A stretch of DNA of 64,000 nucleotides from Octopus sinensis (taxonomy: Eukaryota). The position numbers and the translations under genes are program-made. The notes below the pieces were generated by a model, which did no database searches, was not told where the DNA came from, and was given only the letters and a program-made list of their open reading frames with translations. The DNA is taken from positions 12,152,001-12,216,000 of the forward strand of contig NC_043016.1 of NCBI RefSeq assembly GCF_006345805.1, given 5' to 3'. Positions 17,980 to 39,712 of this stretch are shown here, piece by piece (position 1 is the stretch's first letter; every line of letters begins with the position of its first letter).

Positions 17980-17997
17980 ATGGACTTCCCCAGCTCG
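17980..17997 (+). CDS. CCS: CCS exon 1 coding part (MDFPSS)
   Basis: gcagcATGg Kozak-like start in the CpG-rich patch, followed by |gtgcgt. Phase 0 joins exon 2 in frame. Identified by context only. Confidence 0.7.
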
Positions 17998-18184
17998 GTG
18001 CGTGATTTTTTTTTTTTCTTTTAATTCATAATGCTTCAATCATCATCGTTTTTATGGAACTTTGTTCGACTGCTGATCAATTGCTTTCCTTTAAATTTAT
18101 TATTTTCTTCTTTTGCTTTTTTTTCATATGGTTCGATACGTAAATATGTTTCTTTAGGATTGAAACCCTAACTTTCGCCCATTA

Positions 18185-19140
18185 ATTATTATTATTATTC
18201 CTGTTTTGTCCCTTTATGTAATCATGCGTGTCAGCCCTTGTGGCCAATAAAAAAGAATTGATTATTATTATTATTATTTTACACGATTTTTTCACAAACG
18301 GACAAAACCCTTTGCAACCTTTCGTCCTGTTTTGTCCCTTTATGTTTTCTAATCATGTGTGTCAGCCCTTGTGGCCAATAAAAAAGAATTAATTATTATT
18401 ATTATACGATAGGCTTCAAGGGACTGAAATTTGTAGAGAGGAGAGGTTTGTAAAGTAAATAAAACTGACGCTGCTGGTACTTAACTGGTATTTATTTTGC
18501 TTTGCGGTATTTCGTCTGCCGTTATGTTCTGAGTTCAAATTCCGCCGAGGTCGACTTTGCCTTTCATCCTTTCGGGGTCGATTAAATAAGTACCAGTTAC
18601 GCACTGGGGTCGATGTAATCGACTTAATACCTATGTCTGTCCTTGTTTGTCCCCTCTGTGTCTAGCCCCTTGTGGGTAATAAAGAAATAGGTAGTTATTT
18701 TGATGACCCCGAAAGGATGAAAGACAAAGTCGACCTCGGCGACATTTGAACTCTGAATGTAAAGCGGAATGATGATAATAATAATAATATTGAAGATGAT
18801 TTCAAATTTTGGCACAAGGCCAGCAATTGTCCCCTCTCTGTAAAACTTTTATGGCGAATAAAAAAACAGGTACTCAATTTCTCGACCCCGAAAGGATGAA
18901 AGGCAAAGCCAACCTCAGCGGCATTTGAACCCAGAACGTAAAGACGAACGAATAATAATGATTTCTGTTATAGGCAGAAGACCTGAAATTTGGTAGGAGG
19001 GGACTAGTCGATCACATAGCCACCACCACCATCCCTAGTGCCTTACTGGTACTCAATTTATCGACCCCGAAAGAATGAAAGGAAAGGTCGACCTCGGCGG
19101 AAGTTGAACTAAGAACGTAGCGGCAGGCGAAATAATAATA
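18185..19140. mobile_element. Cluster of SINE pieces (GAGTTCAAATTCCGCCGAGGTCGAC family) in both orientations. Other copies at about 14680, 30820, 31495, 34660, 36070, 47720 and 55960.
   Basis: Repeated CCCCGAAAGGATGAAAGGCAAAGTCGAC motif and (AAT)n tails. Confidence 0.8.
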
Positions 19141-21039
19141 ACAATAATCTGAATCAAGTACAAGCTACAACTAAAAAAATTGGTGTGCTCGCACACATCT
19201 ACAAATTTTTGAAATAATTGTACCTGTTTTTTTTAATCTACACCTTCTGAAAGGTATTTTGCAGAAAATTTCATTTTCTCATAACTTTTAGAAGAAAGTG
19301 TATTTTTATACCCTTCCTTCTAAAAGTTGTGAGGAAGTGGGGGACACACTTATTGCAAGTTGCCTTGCGTTTTACGTAGGTAAATTTTAAAATTTATTTT
19401 ATTATTGTTAAAATTAGACTAAAAGAAAATTCAGAAATTAGTAAATTTAACAGGTTCTTCTCTTTTATTCCAACTTCTTCCACTTCGGAAACGATTCGTG
19501 TTTCTTTTAGCAATTTGGAAAAACAAATGAAACTTTATCCACCTTTATGAGTGAAGCAGACTAGGGTAATAGAACAACGCAATTAACTTATTCTTTATAA
19601 GTACTTTTGAAAAACTAACAGTTTTTCGCTTAATTTTGGAATTTTATATCCGTTTTATTATCAGTCGTTTATGTACAAATTCTTAAAACTAATAATAAAG
19701 TTAGCAATGTTTCGTTTGTGCCATAAATAAAGTTTTGTTTCGTGAAGTGTGGTTACTGAATATAGACTTGGCAAGATAAACAAAATTTTGGAAGTTCCAA
19801 CTTGGATAACTCACTATATTTTCTTCCTTGATTTCTGGAAAGAAAACTCGTAAATTCTGTCCTCATAGTATGCGCACACTATCACTTTCTAAGCGCATGA
19901 TTAGTACACATATGGTCACTCTCACTTCATTTTTCACTCCCTTTAGCAAAGAAAATTGAATTACACTCAAGAATCTATATATTCTTGAAATTTAGAAATG
20001 TCGATTTTTGCCAATTTTTTTGCAGGTTCGTATTCCCTGTAGCCGAAAGGGAGAGGTTTGTGTCGAAAAAAACAACTTTTTAAGGGTGGTTTTTGTGGAC
20101 GGTGGACTGGTATTTATTTTCGATGGTTTGTTTTCCTTGTAGCTCTTTCATGTCACTATTTAAATTATTTTCTTCATCGTTTATATTTGAATATGAATTG
20201 TCAGTTGTTTCTTTTTCTTTTTTCTTTCTTTTTTTACTTTTAATATTATTATCAGGCAGATACATAATTGTCAAGAAGCCTCAGACAAATACTTTGCGTT
20301 ATCAAGTTACTACCCTTTATACTTTGAGTTCAAATCTCGCCTGATTTTCCTTTTATTTAACCGTGGTCGATAAAATAAAATATCAGTGAAATATTAAGTT
20401 ATTTAATCGTCTATAATCTCCCTCAAGATCTATGGGCGACGCTAAGAAGCAGTTTATTTTTCAAAGTTTTGGAAGTTTACTTGAAATGCAACAACTTCTA
20501 GACTTGTAATGTTGCTTATGAAGATGCATCATTCGTTACTTTGGCGCTACCACCTGCCAGAAATCAAGGGAAAAAGTCATTTTTTGAAAATTTTAGCTGT
20601 TAAGTTTGCATTCCAGTTACATGGTCTCGGGTTCAGTCCCACAGCGTGGCACCTTCTACTGTAGAAGACGGGCTTGATTTTTTTTCTGTTTGGTTTCATT
20701 TTCCGAAATTTTAAAATTAAGTGAAATTTTTCAAATTTGGAATATTGATGTAATTTTTCACGTTGAATCTGATGTTATTCATTTGTTCTTGAAAAATTTT
20801 AGAAAAGAGTTACTGAAGTTTAAAGTCTGATAATTTTTGTCTAAGAAATCAGGATTTGGAAGCTAGCATTTTATGCACAATGACACCATTACGACGACAA
20901 AACATTTGATGATTGAAGTTATAATAACTTAAGTCATATAATGCTAAAATTACCCCTCCCCCCAAAATGGTTAAATTACTAAAAAGCAGGTACTTCTTGG
21001 TTATCTCACCTCCATTCAAAAATTTAGTTATCTCCCCCT

Positions 21040-22740
21040 GTAGTGTAGGATACAGCTTAGTCACCTGTATATAATCAAGTTATTTGGGAAAGCACCGTCC
21101 CCAATGACTGGTGTAGCAGTATCATAGTCAGCTGCTGCAAGGGTAAAGGTGATGCCTTATGTAGAAACAACTACAGAGGTATCAAACTGCTGAACCAGGT
21201 CATGAAAGTTACTGAGAGGGTTATAGCACAACTGATAAGAAATAGAATTAAACTAGATGAGATGCAGTTTGGTTTTGTACTTGGGAAGAGTACCATAGAT
21301 ACTATCTTCCTAGTGAGACAGCTGCAGGAAAAGTACTTGGCCAAAAGTAAGCCATTGTACTTAGCCTTCATCGACCTGGAGAAAGCTTTTGACAGAGTTC
21401 CCTGCTCTGTTACATGGTGGTCTCTAAGGAAGTTAGGAGTAGAGGAGTGGCTTGTTAGAGCTCTGCTGTCAGTAAGGTGAGAGTCGGCCATGAATACAGT
21501 GATGAATTCAGCATTCAGGTAGGGGTTCACCAGGACTCAGTTCTCAGCCCACTCTTATTCATCATAGTCCTCCAGGCCACAACAGATGAATTCAAAACTG
21601 GATGCCCATGGGAACTGCTATATGCTGATGACCTTGCTCTTATTGCAGAATCTTTAGCAGAACTGGAGAAGAAATTCCAGATATGGAATCAAAGGACCTT
21701 AAAGTTAACCTAGCAAAGGTCAAAGTTGTTGTTAGTAAGAAAGAAGATAAAACTCTCGTTCTGTCAGGGCCATTTACCTGACAGAACGAGAGTTTTATCT
21801 TCTTTCTTACTAACAACAACTTTGACCTTTGCTAGGTTAACTTTAAGGTCCTTTGATTCCATATCTGGAATTTCTTCTCCAGTTACCTGACAGGTTCAAT
21901 AAGTTGGAAGAAATTCCATTCACTTTACCTAGTGTAAATTATGGACACATAAGAGAATGAATGGAATCACAGGTAGATTAACAGATAAAGTAGTCTTTGT
22001 GTGCAGGAACAATAAGCACTGAGAACCCACAGGACTTAGATTCTCTCAAATGCCCAGGAGGCTCTCTTGAGAATGTAGATAGTTTCTGTTACCTAGGTGA
22101 CCAAATTAGCATTGGAGGAGGATGCTCTGAAAGTATTGTTTCTAGAATAAGAATAGGGTGGAGGAAATTCAGATAGCTATATTATGGTGGGAGGTTTCAG
22201 GTATACCTAAACAAGTGTGTCCCCTCCTGACTTCATTTCCTCATAACTTTCAGAAAAATAGATTTTCCCTTAATGGAATTTATTACAGATGCCTTTCAAA
22301 GGTGTTGATTCTGATTATATTGTAATTTAATGTGGCAACAAGAAGGACTCTCTCTCAGAGTGAAAGGAAGACTGTATGATGCTTGTGTGTGAATGGCTAT
22401 ACTCCATGGTAGTAAGACATGGGCTCTGAATGCAGAAGACGTGTAGACTGAAGAGAAATGAAGGAAGTATGCTCCATTGGATGTGCAACATCAGAGCACA
22501 TGTATGACAAAGTGCAAATCTATTGAGAGAAAAGTTGAGTATAAGAGGAATCAAATGCAGCATGCAAGAGAGAAGACTGCACTGGTTTGGACATGTGATG
22601 CGTATGAATGTGGGCAGGTGCATAAAGAAGTGCCGATCACTGAAAGTGGATGGTACCTGCAGAAGAGGGAGATCCAGAAAGATGTGGGATGAAGTGGTAT
22701 GAACCAATTTCAGGATGATGGGCCTTATGGAGGAAATGAT
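21040..22740 (+). mobile_element. Degenerate RTE LINE covering the RT domain, rearranged internally
   Basis: YRGIKLL, QFGF...STIDTIF, AFIDLEKAFDRV, VGVHQDSVLSPLLF and LLYADDL motifs, with frameshifts, a fold-back and an insertion. Confidence 0.92.
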
Positions 22741-22801
22741 AATAGACCCCACTTCTTTGACAGTATCCTGCCACTTATATTATGACCATCAAACCTCAAG
22801 G

Positions 22802-24165
22802 GTATTCCCTGGCACTTGCCACCATCTCTCTCTCTCTCTCTGTCTTTACTTGACCATTCCATCTATATTCTGATCCCTGTCCATTGTGAGTATGCCCTGG
22901 CAGTTTGCCACCATCTATATCTCTCTCTCTTGCCTTTACTTGACCATTCCATTTATATTCTGATCCCTGTCCATTGTGAGTATTCCCTGGCACTTGCCAC
23001 CATCTATATATCTCTCTCTTGCCTTTACTTGACCATTCCATTTATATTCTGATCCCTGTCCATTGTGAGTATTCCCTGGCACTTGCCACCATCTCTCTCT
23101 CTCTCTCTGTCTTTACTTGACCATTCCATTTATATTCTGATCCCTGTCCATTGTGAGTATTCCCTGGCACTTGCCACCATCTATATATCTCTCTCTTGCC
23201 TTTACTTGACCATTCCATTTATATTCTGATCCCTGTCCATTGTGAGTATTCCCTGGCACTTGCCACCATCTCTCTCTCTCTCTCTTGCCTTTACTTGACC
23301 ATTCCATTTATATTCTGATCCCTGTCCATTGTGAGTATTCCCTGGCACTTGCCACCATCTCTCTCTCTCTCTCTTGCCTTTACTTGACATTCCATTTATA
23401 TTCTGATCCCTGTCCATTGTGAGTATTCCCTGGCACTTGCCACCATCTCTCTCTCTCTCTCTTGCCTTTACTTGACATTCCATTTATATTCTGATCCCTG
23501 TCCATTGTGAGTATTCCCTGGCACTTGCCACCATCTCTCTCTCTCTCTCTTGCCTTTACTTGACCATTCCATTTATATTCTGATCCTGTCCATTGTGAGT
23601 ATTCCCTGGCACTTGCCACCATCTCTCTCTCTCTCTCTCTTGCCTTTACTTGACCATTCCATTTATATTCTGATCCCTGTCCATTGTGAGTATTCCCTGG
23701 CACTTGCCACCATCTCTCTCTCTCTCTCTTGCCTTTACTTGACCATTCCATTTATATTCTGATCCTGTCCATTGTGAGTATTCCCTGGCACTTGCCACCA
23801 TCTCTCTCTCTCTCTCTCTTGCCTTTACTTGACCATTCCATTTATATTCTGATCCCTGTCCATTGTGAGTATTCCCTGGCACTTGCCACCATCTCTCTCT
23901 CTCTCTCTTGCCTTTACTTGACCATTCCATTTATATTCTGATCCCTGTCCATTGTGAGTATTCCCTGGCACTTGCCACCATCTCTCTCTCTCTCTCTTGC
24001 CTTTACTTGACCATTCCATTTATATTCTGATCCCTGTCCATTGTGAGTATTCCCTGGCACTTGCCACCATCTCTCTCTCTCTCTCTTGCCTTTACTTGAC
24101 CATTCCATTTATATTCTGATCCCTGTCCATTGTGAGTATTCCCTGGCACTTGCCACCATCTATAT
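22802..24165. repeat. ~89-bp minisatellite, about 15 units, each with an internal variable (CT)n
   Basis: 16 occurrences of CCCTGGCA(C/G)TTGCCACCATC at 87-93 nt spacing. Confidence 0.97.
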
Positions 24166-24228
24166 CCTGCTGTCTCCCACTTTCTCTCTCTCCTTCACAG
24201 CAGTACATCTGTTTCTGTTTTCATTCCT

Positions 24229-24264
<36 letters not shown>

Positions 24265-26314
24265 CAGCCAAGTAAAGCATGTACCTCCTCTACAGCTAGA
24301 TGCCTGTTTCTGTCTCTCTGTCTCACTATATAATCTTTCATCACCTCCACCACTGCATCTTCCCCTCTCAAAAGAATTTTGTCTTGCAGGTTACTAGGTG
24401 ACCCTGTCAGTGCAGGTGCCACTTAAAAGCATGTAGTCCACACTGTAAAGTGGTTGGCATTTGGAAAGGCATCCAGCTGTAAAAACTATGCCAAAACTGA
24501 CCTCACCTGTGCTTGTACCATGTAAAAAGCACTAAGTTCACTCTACTGAGTGGTTGGTGTTAGGAAGGGCATCCACCTGTAAAAATCCTGCCAAAACAGT
24601 CACAGAAGTCTGGTGCAGGCTTCTTTCTGGCTGGCTCCTGTCAAACTCTCCAACCCATGCCAGCATGGAAAGCAGATGTTAAACAATGATGATGATGATA
24701 ATTGTGGTAGCACAATTTAGGTATTCTAAATAAATGTTAAAAATTATGTTATGCAATATTGAAATACCTTTTAATAATTTTTATTGTAAGGAAAATGGGA
24801 TTTACAATAAATGCCAATGTGTGCCTTATGAATACATTTGAGCACTGTACAGACCAGGCCGAAGGCTGGGAAGCCTGCTAGTATGTACTTAAAATGAAAA
24901 AATAATCTTTTATTTCCTCATGTAAAAATGTTTCTTAGCTTTCCTTCCACCCAGCATTCATGAAATATGCTTCCCCGGTCATCACACACTTTTTTTTAAA
25001 CATCTTTGTAGAAGCAGTAATGAAGACTGACCATTGTAGATCTTCCAAAGACTGATGTGTTCAATACTATTGGTATTCAGTTTAAGTAATTGAATATTTA
25101 CACCTGTATTGTGGTGGGAGGTTTCAGGTATACCTAAACAGGTGTGTCCCCTCCTGACTTCATTTCCTCATAACTTTCAGAAAAATAGATTTTCCCTTAA
25201 TGGAATTTATTACAGATGCCTTTCAAAGCTGTAGATTTTTTTTTATATAGGAATTTAATGTGAAAATTTTGTTCAGGAGTTTAGGTAATTTACATGGATC
25301 AGTTTTGTTTTCTTATAACTTTTTTAGAAACTATCTATTAATAAAATTTTCTACAAATACCTCTCAGGTGGTATAGGTTAGGATTATATCAGAATTTAAT
25401 GTGGAGAAAAAAGATTGGTAGGCCCTCAAACATACACACCAGTACACATCATCATTTAATGCCTGCTTTCTATGCTAACATGAGCTGGATGGTTTGATAG
25501 GAACTGGCAGACTACAACTAATATCTCACTCTGTCATCTGATATTCAGTAAATGAAGGTGAATATTGATTGTAGTCTGTCATCACAAATTTTTTATGAAA
25601 AAGACATTTTTTGGATGAGGGAAAAATGTACATTGAAATTTGAATTGTGAGAAGCACCAGCGAGTTATTCCAATTTTGTGTGTTTTGGGACAAAGGTTAG
25701 AATATTTCTGTCAAAATTCACTGTCTTTGTTTCAATTAATTTTTAAAACAAATTCTTTTATTCTTTTACTTGTTTCAGTCATTTGACTGCAGCCATGCTG
25801 GAGCACCGCCTTTGGTCGAACAAAATGATCCCAAGACTTATTCTGTCGGTCTCTTTTGCCGAGCCGCTAAGTTATGGGTACATAAACACACCAACATCTC
25901 CCTCTCTCCTATACTCCATTCTTGACCCCTCTCTTGTCTGCTATCATTCTCAGTGCCCTTTTATATCTACCTGCAAGCCCTGCTTACTATAGCCCCATGT
26001 GTACCTCTATATCCCCCTCCCTGCTGCTCCTACACTTTGCACATCTTTCTGCTACTTTCTACTCTATTCCCCTTCTTGAACCATTCCTATTTCCGTCATC
26101 TTACCCCTCTCCATTCCATTCATTTCCATCCCCAATTCTAACCGTCTCTTGCTCCCCTTATACACTCTTATGAAACTTCAGAAGTGCAAAATTTTTTTCC
26201 ATTACCTAACTTGGAATGAGATATTGATGGGTGTTTTTGTTCTTTTTTTGTTTAATAAAAAATTTTTGTAGAGTAAAATTTTCATTGTAACTTTTTTTAA
26301 AATTTTGTTTTCAG

Positions 26315-26387
26315 ACCGAGTATGCAGTTCAGATGTCTTGTAAGAGTTGTGTAAATGCTGTTAAAAAGACTTTGGAAGGAGTTGATG
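26315..26387 (+). CDS. CCS: CCS exon 2 (TEYAVQMSCKSCVNAVKKTLEGVD; Atx1-like domain, MxCxxC)
   Basis: ttttcag| acceptor and |gtaata donor; 73 nt, phase 0-1. Intact MSCKSC copper motif. Confidence 0.95.
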
Positions 26388-32829: not shown

Positions 32830-33435
32830 CATAATGGTTAGGGTATTCAGCTCATGGTTGTAAGGTCAGGAACTTGTTTTATGGTGGCACATTGTGTCTT
32901 TGAGTAAGACAGTTTATTTCACGTTGCTCCAGTCCAATCAGCTAGCAAAAACAAGTAGAACCTGTATTTCAAAGGGACAGCCTTGTCATACTCTGAGTCT
33001 TCCTAAGGATTACATTAAGGGTATACATGTCTGTGGAGTACTCAGCCACTTGCACATCAATTTCACGAGCAGGCTATTCTGTTGATTGGATCAACAGGAG
33101 CGTTTGTTGTCACAACTGATGGGGTGCCAGGGGTATCTGGCTCATTATCATAAGGTCATGGGTTTGATATCCAGCAGTTCATTATGTCCTTGAGCAAGAC
33201 ACTTTATTTCACGTTGCCCCAGTCCACTCAGGTGGGTAAAAACAAGTTGTACCTGTAATTCAAAGGGTAAGCCATGTCACAATCTGTGTCTTGCTGAATC
33301 TCCCCGAGAACTACGTTAAGGGTACACGTGTCTGTGGAGTGCTCGGCCACTTGCACATTGATTTCACAAGCAAGCTGTTCCGTTGATCGGATCAACTGGA
33401 ACATGTATTATTGCAATTGACAAAGTGCCAGAGTG
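32830..33435 (+). mobile_element. Two head-to-tail SINE copies (TGTCCTTGAGCAAGACACTTTATTTCACGTTG family). Relatives at 35090-35450(+) and 37830-38140(-).
   Basis: tRNA-like head, CORE-like central motif and a shared GTCTGTGGAGTACTCAGCCACTTGCAC body. Confidence 0.8.
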
Positions 33436-33979: not shown

Positions 33980-35516
33980 GTAAGTTTTATTGAATAATTT
34001 TCTTTATTCTTTCATGAATGAAAAGTATTCTACACAATAAAAGTATGGTTGAATGTTGTGTACTTCTGTAAGTTTTAGTAGACAGTCTCATTTACCAAAG
34101 AATGCAACCTTCCTGTTTCTGCCAACTCACAACCTATTACTTTCCATTCCAACATCTCAAGAATTATGGAGTCATTAACGACCACCATAAATATATCTTT
34201 TCTTTTGCATTTATTGTCACCTAGTAACCATCGTTACCGTTTCCATGCAAACAGATCCACTAAAAGCCCTTTCCTACAATCCATATTAGTTGTCTCTCAA
34301 AGTTAAAAACTTCAGTAGAAGCAATATTGTTGCTCTTAACTTGCATAAATCTTCCAATCTTTGGTCTGCCATGAAAGCTTCTTGGAAAATTTCTTTTCTC
34401 GTGAATTCTGTCTCTGATCTCTTGAACCTGAAGTTTCCTGTCAGACTAATCCTTCTTAGTATCTACAGACTGTGTCTAACCCATGACCTATCAACCTTGG
34501 TCGGCCTTAAGATTACATCTTCCTCATGCTGTACTTGCTGTATCAATCCATGCCTGCTGTTCTGGCCACACATACACACTCATACACATATGATATCACT
34601 TCCATAGATTGGCCGAGTCGTTAGAACATTAAACAAAATACAATATTTATTCTGGCGCCTTAATGTGGCAAGCTGGCAGAATTGCTAGCATACCAAGCTT
34701 AGTGGCATTTTGTCTGTTTTTACATTCTGAGTTCAAATTCTGACATGGTTGACTTTAGCTTTCATCCTTGTGGGGTCAATAAAATAAGTACCAGTTGATT
34801 ACTGAGGTCAATGCAATTTGGGGGGAGGGGACTAGTCGATTACACTGACCCCAGTGCTTGACTGGTACTTATTTTATCAACCCGAAATTGTTGGCCTTGT
34901 GCCAAAATTTGAAACCAGTATTTATTCTCGCACCTTGCGTTCTAGGTTCAAGTCTGGTTGAGCTCCACTTTACCTTTCATTCCCCCAGGGTCAATAAAGC
35001 ACTAGTTTAGGGTGGCAAACTCACAGAAGTATTTATGTTAGGCAGGTGGCTTTCTGGTACTTGTTTAAACTGTTTGTATTCTGAGTTCATATCATGTAGC
35101 TTTTGTGAGTAGTAGATTTTATTTTGTAATGGTTCATGGCTTAGTGCTTAGGGTACTTGGCTCATGATTGCAAGGCCACGAGTTCAATTCTCTGCAGTAT
35201 GTTGTGTCCTTGAGCAAGACACTTTATTTCACCTTGCTCCAGTCCATTCAGCTGGCAAAAATGAGCAATCCTATGATGGCAAAAGGCCAGCTGTGTCACA
35301 TTCTGTGTCGTGCTGAATCTTCCTGTGAAAAACGTTAAGAGTACACATGTCTGTGGAGTACTCAGCCATTTGCACATTGATTTCACAAGCAGGTTGTTCT
35401 GTTGATTGGATCATTTGGATCCCTCACCATCATAACCAACAGAGTGCCAGACTTAATCTACCACCATATTTAACACCACTGCCACCTGGCACCTAGTTTA
35501 TCATTACATTACTGTA

Positions 35517-35852: not shown

Positions 35853-36777
35853 TTACTATAATAAAAGTGTAGGTAGAATTCAAAAGCAAAATTTTGGTTC
35901 ATTAAGAAAAGTCTCCTCCAAGGAAGCAGTCTTGATGGTAATAAGGATGTTTGAAGCCCAATAAACAGTTTTTCTACACACATAAAATTCAAATATCAGT
36001 TTGTTTTAGCAGTTGTTCCTATTTAGTTTATTAAATAAATAAATGTTTTATAAATTTTGTAGTTGCAGCGCTATACATTCTGAGTTCAAATTCCACTCTG
36101 AGGACAGCTTTGCTTTTCGTCCTTTCTGGGTTGATAAAATAAGTACCAGTCAAGCACTGGGGTCAGTGTAATCGACTAGTCCCCTCCCCCCAAATTGCAG
36201 GTTTTGTGCCTATATTAGAAAGGATAAATTTTCTAGTTGCAGGCGTGACTGTATGGTTAAGAGGTTCACCTCCCAATCACATAGTTTTGGGTTCAATCCC
36301 ACTGTGTGGCACCTTGAGCAAGTGCCCTCTATTATAACCCCAGTCTGACCATAGCCTTGTGTGTACATTTTCTAGATGGAAACTAAAAGAAGCCTATCAT
36401 ATGAGTGAGTGTGTGTTTGTGTCTCCTTATCTTGAGATTGTATGATTGTTATAAAAGAACCTTACTGTCATACAAGCAATGTAATTCATTTCCAATACTC
36501 TGGCATGAACATGTCTGGCCATGGAGAAATATTACCTTACATGGAAACAGGTGAGGGTTGGCGACAGGAAGGGCATCTGATTATAGAAAATCTGTCTCAG
36601 GAAACTCTATCTGATCCATGCAAAAATGGAATAGTGGACATAAATGGTGATGATGATGATGATGATGTTGATGGTGATGTCTAAAATTCTAGTGTTTTTA
36701 AAATGTATTACCATTAAATGTGTTAATTATCCATTCATTCACTCAGAATTCACACTGATGTATTTTATTTGTTATAG

Positions 36778-36932: not shown

Positions 36933-39712
36933 GTAAATACTTTATTTAGAACTTTAAAATATACATCTTCTGAAGTTTAATCATATTTAATGAATCAGAT
37001 CTGTTGCATTCGTGTACTTTGTCAGTGTTCATCCTTCACATCTTAGGAAAGAGTGTTGACCTGATTGCTCAACTTGCTAGAAAAATAGCCAAACCTCCCT
37101 CAGATCCAACCCTACAGTTGTAAAATACAGGGTACAAAGAATTATGTGGGATAAAACATGCTGTCTGAAGGCCTCAAAGCCTAAACCAATCATATGATTT
37201 AGGATTTTAGGGTTTGTTCCCACTGCAAGACCCTGAAGGATGAAGTTTTTTACTATGATCATGGGCTGACCGAGACTTTGTGAATGAATTGGTAAGAAAC
37301 TGTAAGAAGCTTGTCATTAAACAGATTCCAAAGAAGCAAGTGTTGATGCATGTCAGCAAAACTTTTATGTAGTAAAATTGATAAAAAGAGTACAATGAAC
37401 TTGCCATGAGGAGTGGAATAATCCAAAGTTTCAGACGGATTCCTTCTGGGTGACAAGTTGAAAGGAGAGAAATTAACGAGAGACACAGTAGAGTTTTACA
37501 TCCTCTACTGTTAATTGCACGTAGAATATTGGGTTTAAAAGAACCTTGGATACAAAAAAGTTGAAGGGCAGCCTTCAACCTTTTTTCCCATCTGAAGGTT
37601 TTTAAGCCAATATCCTACATGTTGTTATTTATAGCTTTATCTATTTCGAATTCCATCATAAAAAAATAATTTACTTTATATTTCTCAAAGTTTCTAAAAT
37701 CATACAATATGTGTTGTGTGCACAGACAGATATTTATAATTTACACAGAATTTTATTGTGGTTCATTAACTGCAGTACTCTTACAATAGAGATCAGAAGT
37801 TTTGGTTATGGTAAACCAAAAAGAAACCACTCTTAACATAGTTCTCAGGGAGATTCAGCTGGACACAGAATGTGACAAGGCCAGTCCCTTTGAATTACAG
37901 GTACAACTTGTTTTTACCCACCTGAGTGGACTGGAGCAACGTGAAATAAAGTGTCTTGCTCAAGGACATAATGAACTGCTGGATATCAAACCCATGACCT
38001 TATGATAATGAGCCAGATACCCCTGGCACCCCATCAGTTGTGACAACAAACGCTCCAGTTGATCCAATCAACAGAATAGCCTGCTCGTGAAATTGATGTG
38101 CAAGTGACTGAGTACTCCACAGACATGTATACCCTTAATATGTCCTTTAACTAAAGGACATAAGCAAGTCTATGATCAAAAGCATTCCGGCTGTAACCAT
38201 CTTACTTTTTCAGTCGAGCAGTGTGTTCAAGATTCTATACATCTAGGGGTCCTTTTTAAATTTTTCCAAGCTTGTACTGTGTAATATAAGACAAATTTGG
38301 TTATTTCTAACAATTCAAAGGACCTAGAGTGAAGGTGAGGAACCTTTTTTACTACCAGGAATAAACTAAAAATGCGTGTAGGGACTGGGTATATGTATGA
38401 GAAAAATGATAAATTTGTAATTTTACAAATTCAACGGTGTATAACTGTATATTAGTTTAGGAATTTTTAGAGATGAATCAACAAGTTTTTTCAAATTTAA
38501 CTCTTTAGAATTTAAACTGTTCATGTTCAGCCTAAGCCAGATCAAGCCTCTCATTCTTACCTTTACAATGACATTCTAAAAATAAACAATTACATCATTG
38601 AAATCTCAAAGCTGTGAGATAATGCATTCTAAATTCCAAATAATCATCATCATCATCATCATTTAACGTCCGTTTTCCGCGCTAGCATGGGTTGGACGGT
38701 TCAACCGGGGTCTGGGAAGCCAGGAGGCTGCACCAGGCACCAGTCTGATCTGGCAGTGTTTCTACAGCTGGATGCCCTTCCTAACGCCAACCACTCGGTG
38801 AGTGTAGTGGGTGCTTTTTACGTGCCACCGACACAGGTGCCAGGGGGGTCTGGCATCGGCCACAATCAGTTGGTGCTTTTAACGTGCCACCGGCACGGAA
38901 GCCAGCCAAGGCGGCGCTGGCATCGGCCAATGTGGATAAATAAACATTATATTTGATAGAAAAATCTGAATGTCAAAGGGTTAAAATGGTCATATCTAGC
39001 CAAAATATTCTACCTTGTTTTATGTTCAGGGTAGCCAGATCCAGCCTCTTGCTCTGGTCATATCTAGCCACAATATTCTCCTTGTTTTATGGTAAAAACT
39101 GGCCAGATCTGGCTCCTCACACCTACCTTACAATGTCATTCTAAAGCTAGACAATCACACCATTGAAATCTCAAAGCTATGAGACAATGCATGATTAATT
39201 CAGAAAATTGTGAATAAATGAATATTTGACTGAACAATCTGAATGTTGTGAAGGGTTAAGATACAGATGAGGAGTACCATACCTCTGACAGAGCTTTCTT
39301 ACAATCTGCTTAACTTTCTCATCTTTTCCATGACTATACTTCTAAGAAGCAAACTACCTGTTGTATGTGCTTCCATTGAATTTTGATGCAGTGAAGCTAA
39401 TTCTAGGGCTTTTGTAGACTATCTGTAACTTTACTTATTCTTATATATTATGTCAATGTTGACCAACTGAAATTTTACATCATGTGTGTTGTAATGAGAT
39501 TCAATTTAAATACAAACACCTCTGTCCAGTTAGTATTGAAGGGATTAAAATAGATGCAGGAGTGGCTGTGTGGTAAGTAGCTTGCTTACCAACCACATGG
39601 TTCTGGCTTCAGTACCACTGTGTGGCATCTTGGGCAAGTGTCTTCTACTACAGCTTCGGGCCGACCAAAGCCTTGTGAGTGGATTTGGTAGACAGAAACT
39701 GAAAGAAGACTG

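Follow-up and report, generated by a model that had tools for sequence, protein, structure and literature searches.

A perfect 108-bp fold-back in intron 1 of the Octopus sinensis CCS gene, probably formed by serial short-range template switching

Template-switch mutations, as described by the four-point model (Loytynoja & Goldman 2017, PMC5453318; Loytynoja 2022, PMC9435742), consist of forward sequence, a reverse-complement copy of a nearby fragment and a return to the original strand. The same architecture is found in a fold-back with 108-bp arms that lies inside an old long interspersed nuclear element (LINE) in intron 1 of the CCS gene of Octopus sinensis, the East Asian common octopus, within the 64-kb stretch of assembly GCA_006345805.1 that was analysed here (hereafter, the window). 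As in the model, the ancestral allele has no inverted copy, and the new sequence reproduces ancestral sequence close by as its exact reverse complement. The model also produces a perfect inverted repeat in one step, as is proposed for this locus, and the spacer is inverted as in its inter-strand variant; in the template-switch literature (PMC5453318, PMC9435742) such an inversion is the signature of an inter-strand and not of an intra-strand switch. The locus departs from the model in that, instead of a single switch-and-return, it comprises four fragments and three junctions, which would make it a serial version, and additional inverted fragments are explicitly placed by the authors of these papers outside their single switch-and-return scheme. 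In humans, the reported events include some of 90-125 bp and a single one that reaches up to 318 bp, and the 116-nt inverted tract found here falls in the long tail of this distribution. The mutation is thus of a known kind, already described in primates, including rare cases of >100 bp, and the locus is a new and well-documented case at the long end of the range. Its particular value lies in a serial template switch that can be polarised base by base, with two outgroups that fix the ancestor, in a cephalopod instead of a primate or a microbe.

Several other described systems share parts of this design. Template-switch hairpins that gave rise to de novo microRNA (miRNA) genes (Monttinen & Loytynoja 2022, PMC8794818; Monttinen et al. 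2023, PMC10710096) were likewise formed in one event, with complete pairing, in introns, and were transcribed from the start; their preferred primary miRNA (pri-miRNA) stem is ~35 bp, whereas the stem reported here is 108 bp. In quasi-palindrome correction (Ripley 1982, as summarised in the papers citing it) a strand also switches at a short inverted repeat, the counterpart of which would be CAGG...CCTG with its 8-nt spacer. However, the classic model, in that summary, perfects a near-perfect repeat that already exists, while at this locus only 4 bp pre-existed and 104 bp are new. Polymerase-theta end joining and synthesis-dependent microhomology-mediated end joining (SD-MMEJ) have in common with the fold-back a microhomology-primed synthesis, repeated priming and a short flank-copied insert at the final junction. 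When compared with a polymerase-theta end-joining scar, the 9-nt insert and the microhomologies of 4, 2 and 0 nt fit, but neither the inverted loop nor a tract of 116 nt is a good match. Finally, the work on origin-dependent inverted-repeat amplification (ODIRA; PMC10766183) proposes that at a fork, where a short inverted repeat is present, a nascent strand crosses from the leading to the lagging template or back, as may have happened here; the products described there are inverted copy-number variants that arise via hairpin-capped extrachromosomal DNA, in contrast to a 116-nt excursion with an immediate return.

The two arms of the fold-back, 21661-21768 and 21777-21884 (CM016878.1:12173661-12173884 in genome coordinates for the whole structure), are exact reverse complements at 108 of 108 positions and are separated by the 8-nt spacer GCCATTTA. 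Pairing ends at the arm ends, and the flanks add none. A match of this length by chance is effectively impossible. The arms are the longest inverted repeat in the window and, besides a TA microsatellite, they form its only hairpin-type repeat with a short spacer. Folding of a 284-nt region gave -208.8 kcal/mol for RNA, compared with -61 ± 5 kcal/mol for shuffled sequences (z = -28.6), and -135 kcal/mol for DNA (z = -31). The sequence TACCTGACAG is present at both junctions (21775-21784 and 21884-21893), and this junction repeat falls in repeat family D6 (CCATTTACCTGACAG / CCAGTTACCTGACAG). To locate the site in the gene, the window was searched by tblastn with a CCS protein query, which placed the CCS exons on the + strand. 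The exon matches cover the whole of P0001, the database CCS protein of Octopus vulgaris and O. sinensis, except for its first six residues, at 98-100% identity and with a single mismatch at an exon edge; the six missing residues, MDFPSS, are encoded by a separate exon 1 that matches the P0001 N-terminus. The fold-back is located 3.7 kb into intron 1, with 3.7 kb and 4.4 kb separating it from the splice sites. The initial annotation, made from the sequence alone, had described a perfect 108/108 fold-back with an 8-nt loop and had assigned it to the sense strand of CCS intron 1: the exact complementarity of the arms confirms the former, and the bracketing of the site by exons 1 and 2 confirms the latter.

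The history of the site could be read from two other species. Genomic loci encoding P0001 were found in two assemblies, as L001 (CM016878.1), which is base-for-base identical to positions 14980-43943 of the window, and as the O. vulgaris locus L002 (GCA_951406725.2), whereas the O. bimaculoides locus L003 (GCA_001194135.2) was reached via the protein cluster member P0185. Both O. vulgaris and O. bimaculoides harbour this LINE copy in the corresponding intron, where its flanks match as well, and at the orthologous sites only one arm is present (site sequence TCAGGTAAATGGCCCTGTTCAAT; junction CTCGTTCT(C/G)TCAGGTAAATGGCCCTGTTCAATA). The two loci read ...AAAACTCTCGTTCT(C/G)TCAGG TAAATGGC CCTG TTCAATA..., which translates as ...L S G K W P C S I..., and thus carry the very ancestor, GGT AAA TGG CCC TG followed by TTCAAT (GKWPC), that had been predicted from the O. 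sinensis sequence. With O. bimaculoides as the outgroup, both arms were found to share an O. sinensis-specific 13-nt deletion (loss of AACAAAACCTGG and an A/T, destroying ...WKQNLESKG...) and O. sinensis-specific substitutions at 21696 and 21720. The single-arm orthologues and the lesions common to both arms substantiate the earlier claim that the fold-back postdates the LINE.

The pre-event O. sinensis allele was reconstructed as the left flank, the left arm (L), TAAATGGC, CCTG and TTCAAT..., and the observed sequence was tiled greedily with the longest exact matches to either strand of this reconstruction. Every derived base is accounted for by four ancestral fragments in the orientations +, -, - and +, with junction microhomologies of 4, 2 and 0 nt (Table 1). 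The 116-nt tract is the reverse complement of positions 261-376 in the reconstructed sequence, and all templates are situated within 120 nt. The net change amounts to +114 nt; 11 ancestral bases, TAAATGGCCCT, are now present only in the inverted orientation, without a forward copy, and no flanking sequence was deleted. The only earlier inverted repeat at the site was the 4-nt CAGG...CCTG pair, and 104 bp of the arm are new. The CAGG/CCTG microhomology and the occurrence of TACCTGACAG at both junctions had been taken to fit template switching, and the exact forward and reverse-complement tiling agrees with this, with three switches needed and not two. If confirmed in reads, the locus would also serve as a warning to users of aligners and variant callers, in whose output it would appear as a 114-bp insertion of unknown origin.

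With the ancestral state, polarity, tiling and microhomologies as observed, the following course of events may be proposed. A DNA polymerase copying the old LINE fragment in CCS intron 1 would have switched template three times across 120 nt. At the first switch, after ...CTGTCAGG, the 3' end CAGG would have paired with CCTG 12 nt ahead on the strand of opposite sense, and 116 nt would then have been copied backwards, yielding the inverted loop GCCATTTA and the right arm. At the second switch, the end ...CCAGTT would have re-annealed at ...AAATGG (5/6 bases, with an exact TT), so that the 9 nt ACCTGACAG were copied again. At the third switch, where there is no microhomology, synthesis would have gone back to the first template, starting from the G of CCTG and continuing into TTCAAT..., the outcome being a perfect 108-bp palindrome with an 8-nt spacer and a gain of 114 nt. 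We consider it highly probable that the fold-back is a real germline structural mutation, which occurred by such serial short-range template switching once the O. sinensis lineage had separated from that of O. vulgaris. If the nascent top strand had simply snapped back on itself, TAAATGGC would have been kept, but the loop has the opposite orientation to the ancestral sequence, and intra-strand snap-back was rejected on this ground. The switch is likely to have taken place at a replication fork, from the leading strand to the lagging-strand template, rather than during break repair; the resulting allele is presumably selectively neutral.

The same outcome could also have been reached by double-strand-break repair of the polymerase-theta-type alternative end-joining or SD-MMEJ kind, which we treat as a sub-variant of the template-switch explanation and regard as possible, though unlikely. 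A flank-copied insert such as ACCTGACAG, microhomologies of 0-4 nt and repeated priming are recognised scars of these pathways (eLife 2016 e13740; NAR 2010 gkq379; NAR 2017 gkx1056). However, a snap-back in cis of the left break end would have kept the loop as TAAATGGC, and because the loop is inverted, a template in trans (the sister chromatid or the opposite strand) would be needed even in break repair. An inverted tract of 116 nt is far above the usual length of templated insertions. Moreover, only 11 ancestral nt were replaced, and no flanking deletion accompanies them. The long tract and the inverted loop together appear to suit switching at a fork or between sister strands better than polymerase-theta end joining or SD-MMEJ.

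Several points weigh against template switching as proposed here. Three switches, of which one is blunt and one has 2 nt of microhomology, are more complex than a single switch-and-return, and the allele is known from one O. sinensis assembly consensus. Long perfect palindromes are unstable, and long persistence of this one would be unexpected. Exact look-ups of the first-start-to-stop open reading frames over the loop and the right junction returned no match, nor did a homologue search with the stop-to-stop frame across the loop, both of these negatives being uninformative.

The reliance on one consensus raises the question of a technical origin, in which the inverted 116-nt copy would exist only in the PacBio-based assembly, through a chimeric fold-back read, strand switching in vitro or a polishing error. 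Strand-displacing polymerases do make inverted chimeras with microhomology in vitro, the fold-back is carried by one assembly only, and no independent sequence across the loop was found; the other O. sinensis-specific indels in the 850-bp stretch (20, 13 and 3 nt, and the 1.7-kb deletion at 21038) could hint at a poor consensus. Nevertheless, reads with a missed adapter or a snap-back run backwards to the end of the molecule without returning, whereas here, after 125 nt, at 21894, the sequence rejoins colinear DNA that matches O. bimaculoides for ~850 nt further. A single chimeric read should be voted out of a many-read consensus. The window contains no N anywhere, and there is no gap or contig end near the fold-back. 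In addition, lineage-specific lesions are present in both arms, and the junctions are structured like those of biological template switching. Taken together, these features make an artefact improbable.

A formation in two steps was considered as well. A small event would first have turned CCTG into a longer quasi-palindrome (e.g. ...CCTGACAG), and a later single switch-and-return, with ~8 nt of microhomology, would have made the arms. Such a scheme has the attraction that the large event is reduced to the standard two-switch model with a longer primer for the first switch, and ACCTGACAG sits exactly at the return point. Yet the site would have had to undergo two rare events independently, neither O. 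vulgaris nor O. bimaculoides shows an intermediate allele, and the A in front of CCTGACAG requires CTGTCAGGT as its template, since the ancestral C does not account for it. All of this renders a two-step history decidedly improbable.

The remaining candidates were rejected. Twin priming of the L1 type at insertion is contradicted by the orthologous insertions in two species, from which the inversion is missing, and the event therefore came after insertion. Insertion of a foreign fold-back or of a miniature inverted-repeat transposable element does not agree with arms that both consist of local LINE sequence with local lineage-specific lesions. A hairpin-capped end of the transposase or V(D)J type, giving a long 'P-nucleotide' palindrome, would be centred on the break without a spacer, whereas the centre here is the 8-nt TAAATGGC between CAGG and CCTG. 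An ancestor with a second CCTGTCAGG before TTCAAT is inconsistent with the orthologues, which have CCTG directly before TTCAAT, and the other LINE copies in the window give no reading of the ancestral junction, as they are only ~70%-identical 3' fragments, none of which extends over it.

The age of the fold-back can be bracketed by the divergence of the three species, for which the O. vulgaris genome paper cites ~34 My (million years) to O. bimaculoides and ~2.5 My between O. sinensis and O. vulgaris. The LINE insertion is older than ~34 My, because an orthologous copy is present in O. bimaculoides, and the fold-back is younger than ~2.5 My, because the O. vulgaris orthologue has a single arm. 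Among 815 aligned sites, 17 substitutions (2.1%) are specific to O. sinensis, and the two arms do not differ from each other at any position. By a simple Poisson posterior on these two counts, the event would fall within the final 14% (median) to 50% (95% bound) of the lineage, i.e. at ~0.3 My and <1.25 My, which is a rough estimate, because gene conversion within the palindrome could also keep the arms identical. Perfect palindromes of this size (108 bp with an 8-nt spacer) are known to extrude hairpins or cruciforms and are deletion-prone. The present one is probably young, possibly polymorphic and likely to decay from the centre. If confirmed in reads, it would be a young, long palindrome of datable origin with which the lifetime of such structures in the germline of an animal could be studied.

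Given its position on the sense strand of CCS intron 1, the fold-back would be transcribed within the CCS pre-mRNA and form ~108 bp of perfect double-stranded RNA (dsRNA). The initial annotation had spoken of a potential ADAR or Dicer substrate, a fair wording for what a predicted fold suggests. The predicted 108-bp stem, with 43 + 26 = 69 adenosines in its arms, exceeds the length that characterises ADAR substrates (>~50 bp of near-perfect intramolecular RNA duplex). Long duplexes formed by repeats are the main substrate of ADAR hyper-editing across animals, and octopus shows the strongest signal among the surveyed species (PMC5625713); the hairpin is for this reason a plausible ADAR substrate, and hyper-editing by nuclear ADAR would be its expected fate. 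The edited intronic inverted repeats of that study are likewise long, repeat-derived intramolecular duplexes within one pre-mRNA and are very abundant in octopus. They differ in being made up of two separate insertions or of palindromic transposons and in being usually imperfect, whereas the present hairpin is a perfect local duplicate with an 8-nt loop. If confirmed in reads, the locus would supply a pair of alleles for work on ADAR hyper-editing and dsRNA handling, as the hairpin is present in O. sinensis and missing from O. vulgaris in the same gene and intron.

Two stronger readings of the RNA were weighed. It may be that the fold-back is a newborn hairpin-RNA locus of <~1 My, constitutively transcribed in the intron of a housekeeping gene, the duplex of which is processed (into endogenous small interfering RNAs, endo-siRNAs, directed against the many copies of the LINE family in the genome) or heavily edited by ADAR. 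We hold this to be highly improbable; were it true, O. sinensis and O. vulgaris would form a natural before/after system for the handling of new long self dsRNA. Extremely unlikely, in our view, is a functional newborn element under selection, be it an endo-siRNA source, a hairpin RNA (hpRNA), an miRNA-like precursor or an element that acts through ADAR on the way CCS is spliced or expressed. The idea draws on a perfect and very stable hairpin within a transcribed intron, on the very active dsRNA editing in octopus (PMC5625713) and on the precedent of intronic template-switch hairpins that seeded new miRNA genes in primates (PMC8794818, PMC10710096). However, the element is missing in the sister species and hence shows no conservation, it lies far inside the intron (the splice sites are 3.7 kb and 4.4 kb away), and its stem is ~3 times the preferred pri-miRNA length. 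An Rfam scan gave no family at the gathering score; the best match was mir-556 (63.3 bits vs 84), and all of the sub-threshold matches were centred on the palindrome. These sub-threshold matches to miRNA precursors are generic hairpin matches. The locus leaves the knowledge of CCS, LINEs or editing unchanged and holds no surprise, but it makes a good natural test case.

Table 1. Coordinates in the window of the CCS exons and intron, the host LINE, the parts of the fold-back and the ancestral fragments (a-d) that tile it
Feature	Position	Strand or orientation	Details
CCS exon 1, coding part	17980..17997	+	ATG GAC TTC CCC AGC TCG = MDFPSS; then donor GTGCGT
CCS intron 1, ~8.3 kb, holds the fold-back	17998..26314	+	donor at 17998; acceptor ...TTTTCAG ending at 26314
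CCS exon 2, start of HMA domain	26315..26387	+	begins ACC GAG TAT (TEYAVQM), behind TTTTCAG
Old LINE fragment, 5'-truncated, frameshifted	21065..22750 (ends approximate)	+, sense to CCS	RVT_1, stretch GKWPC...CKLWTHKR and C-terminal region
Left arm (L), ancestral orientation	21661..21768	+	last 4 nt CAGG (21765-21768) = microhomology of switch 1
Loop GCCATTTA	21769..21776	+	reverse complement of ancestral TAAATGGC, part of the GKWPC codons
Right arm	21777..21884	+	exact reverse complement of L; with the loop, a 116-nt inverted copy of ancestral L+TAAATGGC
9-nt templated insertion ACCTGACAG	21885..21893	+	second reverse-complement copy, of ancestral CTGTCAGGT; entry via TT, 21883-21884
Ancestral forward sequence resumes, G TTCAATAAGTTGGAAG...	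21894..21973	+	blunt return; colinear with L002 and L003
Fragment a	up to 21768	forward ancestral sequence	no entry junction
Fragment b, 116 nt	21769-21884	reverse complement, ancestral L+TAAATGGC	entry CAGG, 4 nt = reverse complement of CCTG 12 nt downstream
Fragment c, 9 nt, ACCTGACAG	21885-21893	reverse complement, ancestral CTGTCAGGT	entry TT, 2 nt; CCAGTT vs CCATTT 5/6
Fragment d	from 21894	forward ancestral sequence from G of CCTG	blunt entry

The host element contains a reverse-transcriptase domain (Pfam RVT_1, E = 2e-24) with a YADD motif, and its translation is broken by several frameshifts and stops. The Cys-rich stretch GKWPC...VGRNSIHFT*CKLWTHKR sits where related proteins have a PHD finger; its downstream reading, VGRNSIHFT*CKLWTHKR, together with the frameshifts and stops, matches the lesion-riddled LINE with a downstream GRNSI...CKLWTHKR that had been described in the initial annotation. 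The nearest database proteins are only 71% identical and are unnamed fragments with RVT_1 and PHD. RTE elements have been described in Octopus, and RTE, the clade named in the initial annotation, is a candidate assignment for this LINE copy. Its closest relatives, P0065 and P0113, are filed under bacterial names (a Herbaspirillum metagenome-assembled genome and a partial E. coli record), labels that almost certainly reflect contamination of those records with animal DNA.

Further repeats accompany the 3' part of the LINE. A segment of ~158 nt in the LINE 3' region (22177-22334) is 93% identical to 25104-25262, 2.9 kb downstream in the same intron; the first copy is found in O. bimaculoides as well, and the pair probably represents a short interspersed repeat. 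The LINE 3' end is followed immediately by a tandem array with a unit of 89 nt, which extends over 22802-24161 (15.3 copies, 96% identity). In O. bimaculoides the array is represented by one to two units followed by an assembly gap, and in O. vulgaris the region is missing. O. vulgaris is without ~3.6 kb here (21973-25618 vs L002 8504/8502), comprising the LINE 3' part, the 89-nt array and more. Because O. bimaculoides keeps the LINE 3' part, the absence would be due either to a deletion derived in O. vulgaris or to a collapse in its assembly.

Other differences between the species were noted in and around the LINE. Just upstream of it, at 21038, O. sinensis is without ~1.7 kb that is present in O. 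vulgaris (L002 5921-7644) and partly in O. bimaculoides (L003 7695-8689), which makes the loss an O. sinensis-specific deletion, 620 bp from the fold-back. Inside the LINE, O. sinensis-specific deletions of 20 nt (~21458), 13 nt (21683/21684) and 3 nt (~21904) were polarised by O. bimaculoides. Together with the 1.7-kb loss and the fold-back, there are five lineage-specific structural changes in ~850 bp, a cluster that may be a coincidence, or may reflect a locally error-prone region or a weak assembly consensus.

Two additional inverted arrangements were observed further downstream in CCS. In a later intron, 34812-34883 and 36128-36199 form a perfect inverted repeat (72/72) with a spacer of 1244 nt, an arrangement that resembles DNA-transposon terminal inverted repeats. 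O. vulgaris is colinear over all 1.6 kb of this stretch at 95.6% (L002 17722-19303), and the 0 differences between the arms are slightly below the ~3 expected if the repeat is older than the species split. The second is an insertion of ~305 nt at 37829-38139, without a counterpart at that site in O. vulgaris and O. bimaculoides, which is a 95.5% reverse-complement match to 33014-33323, a segment of the same gene that lies 4.5 kb upstream. The O. vulgaris orthologue of this segment gives an equally good match (95.1%), and weaker copies of the family exist; for these reasons the insertion is likelier to be a transposable-element insertion than a second local inverted duplication.

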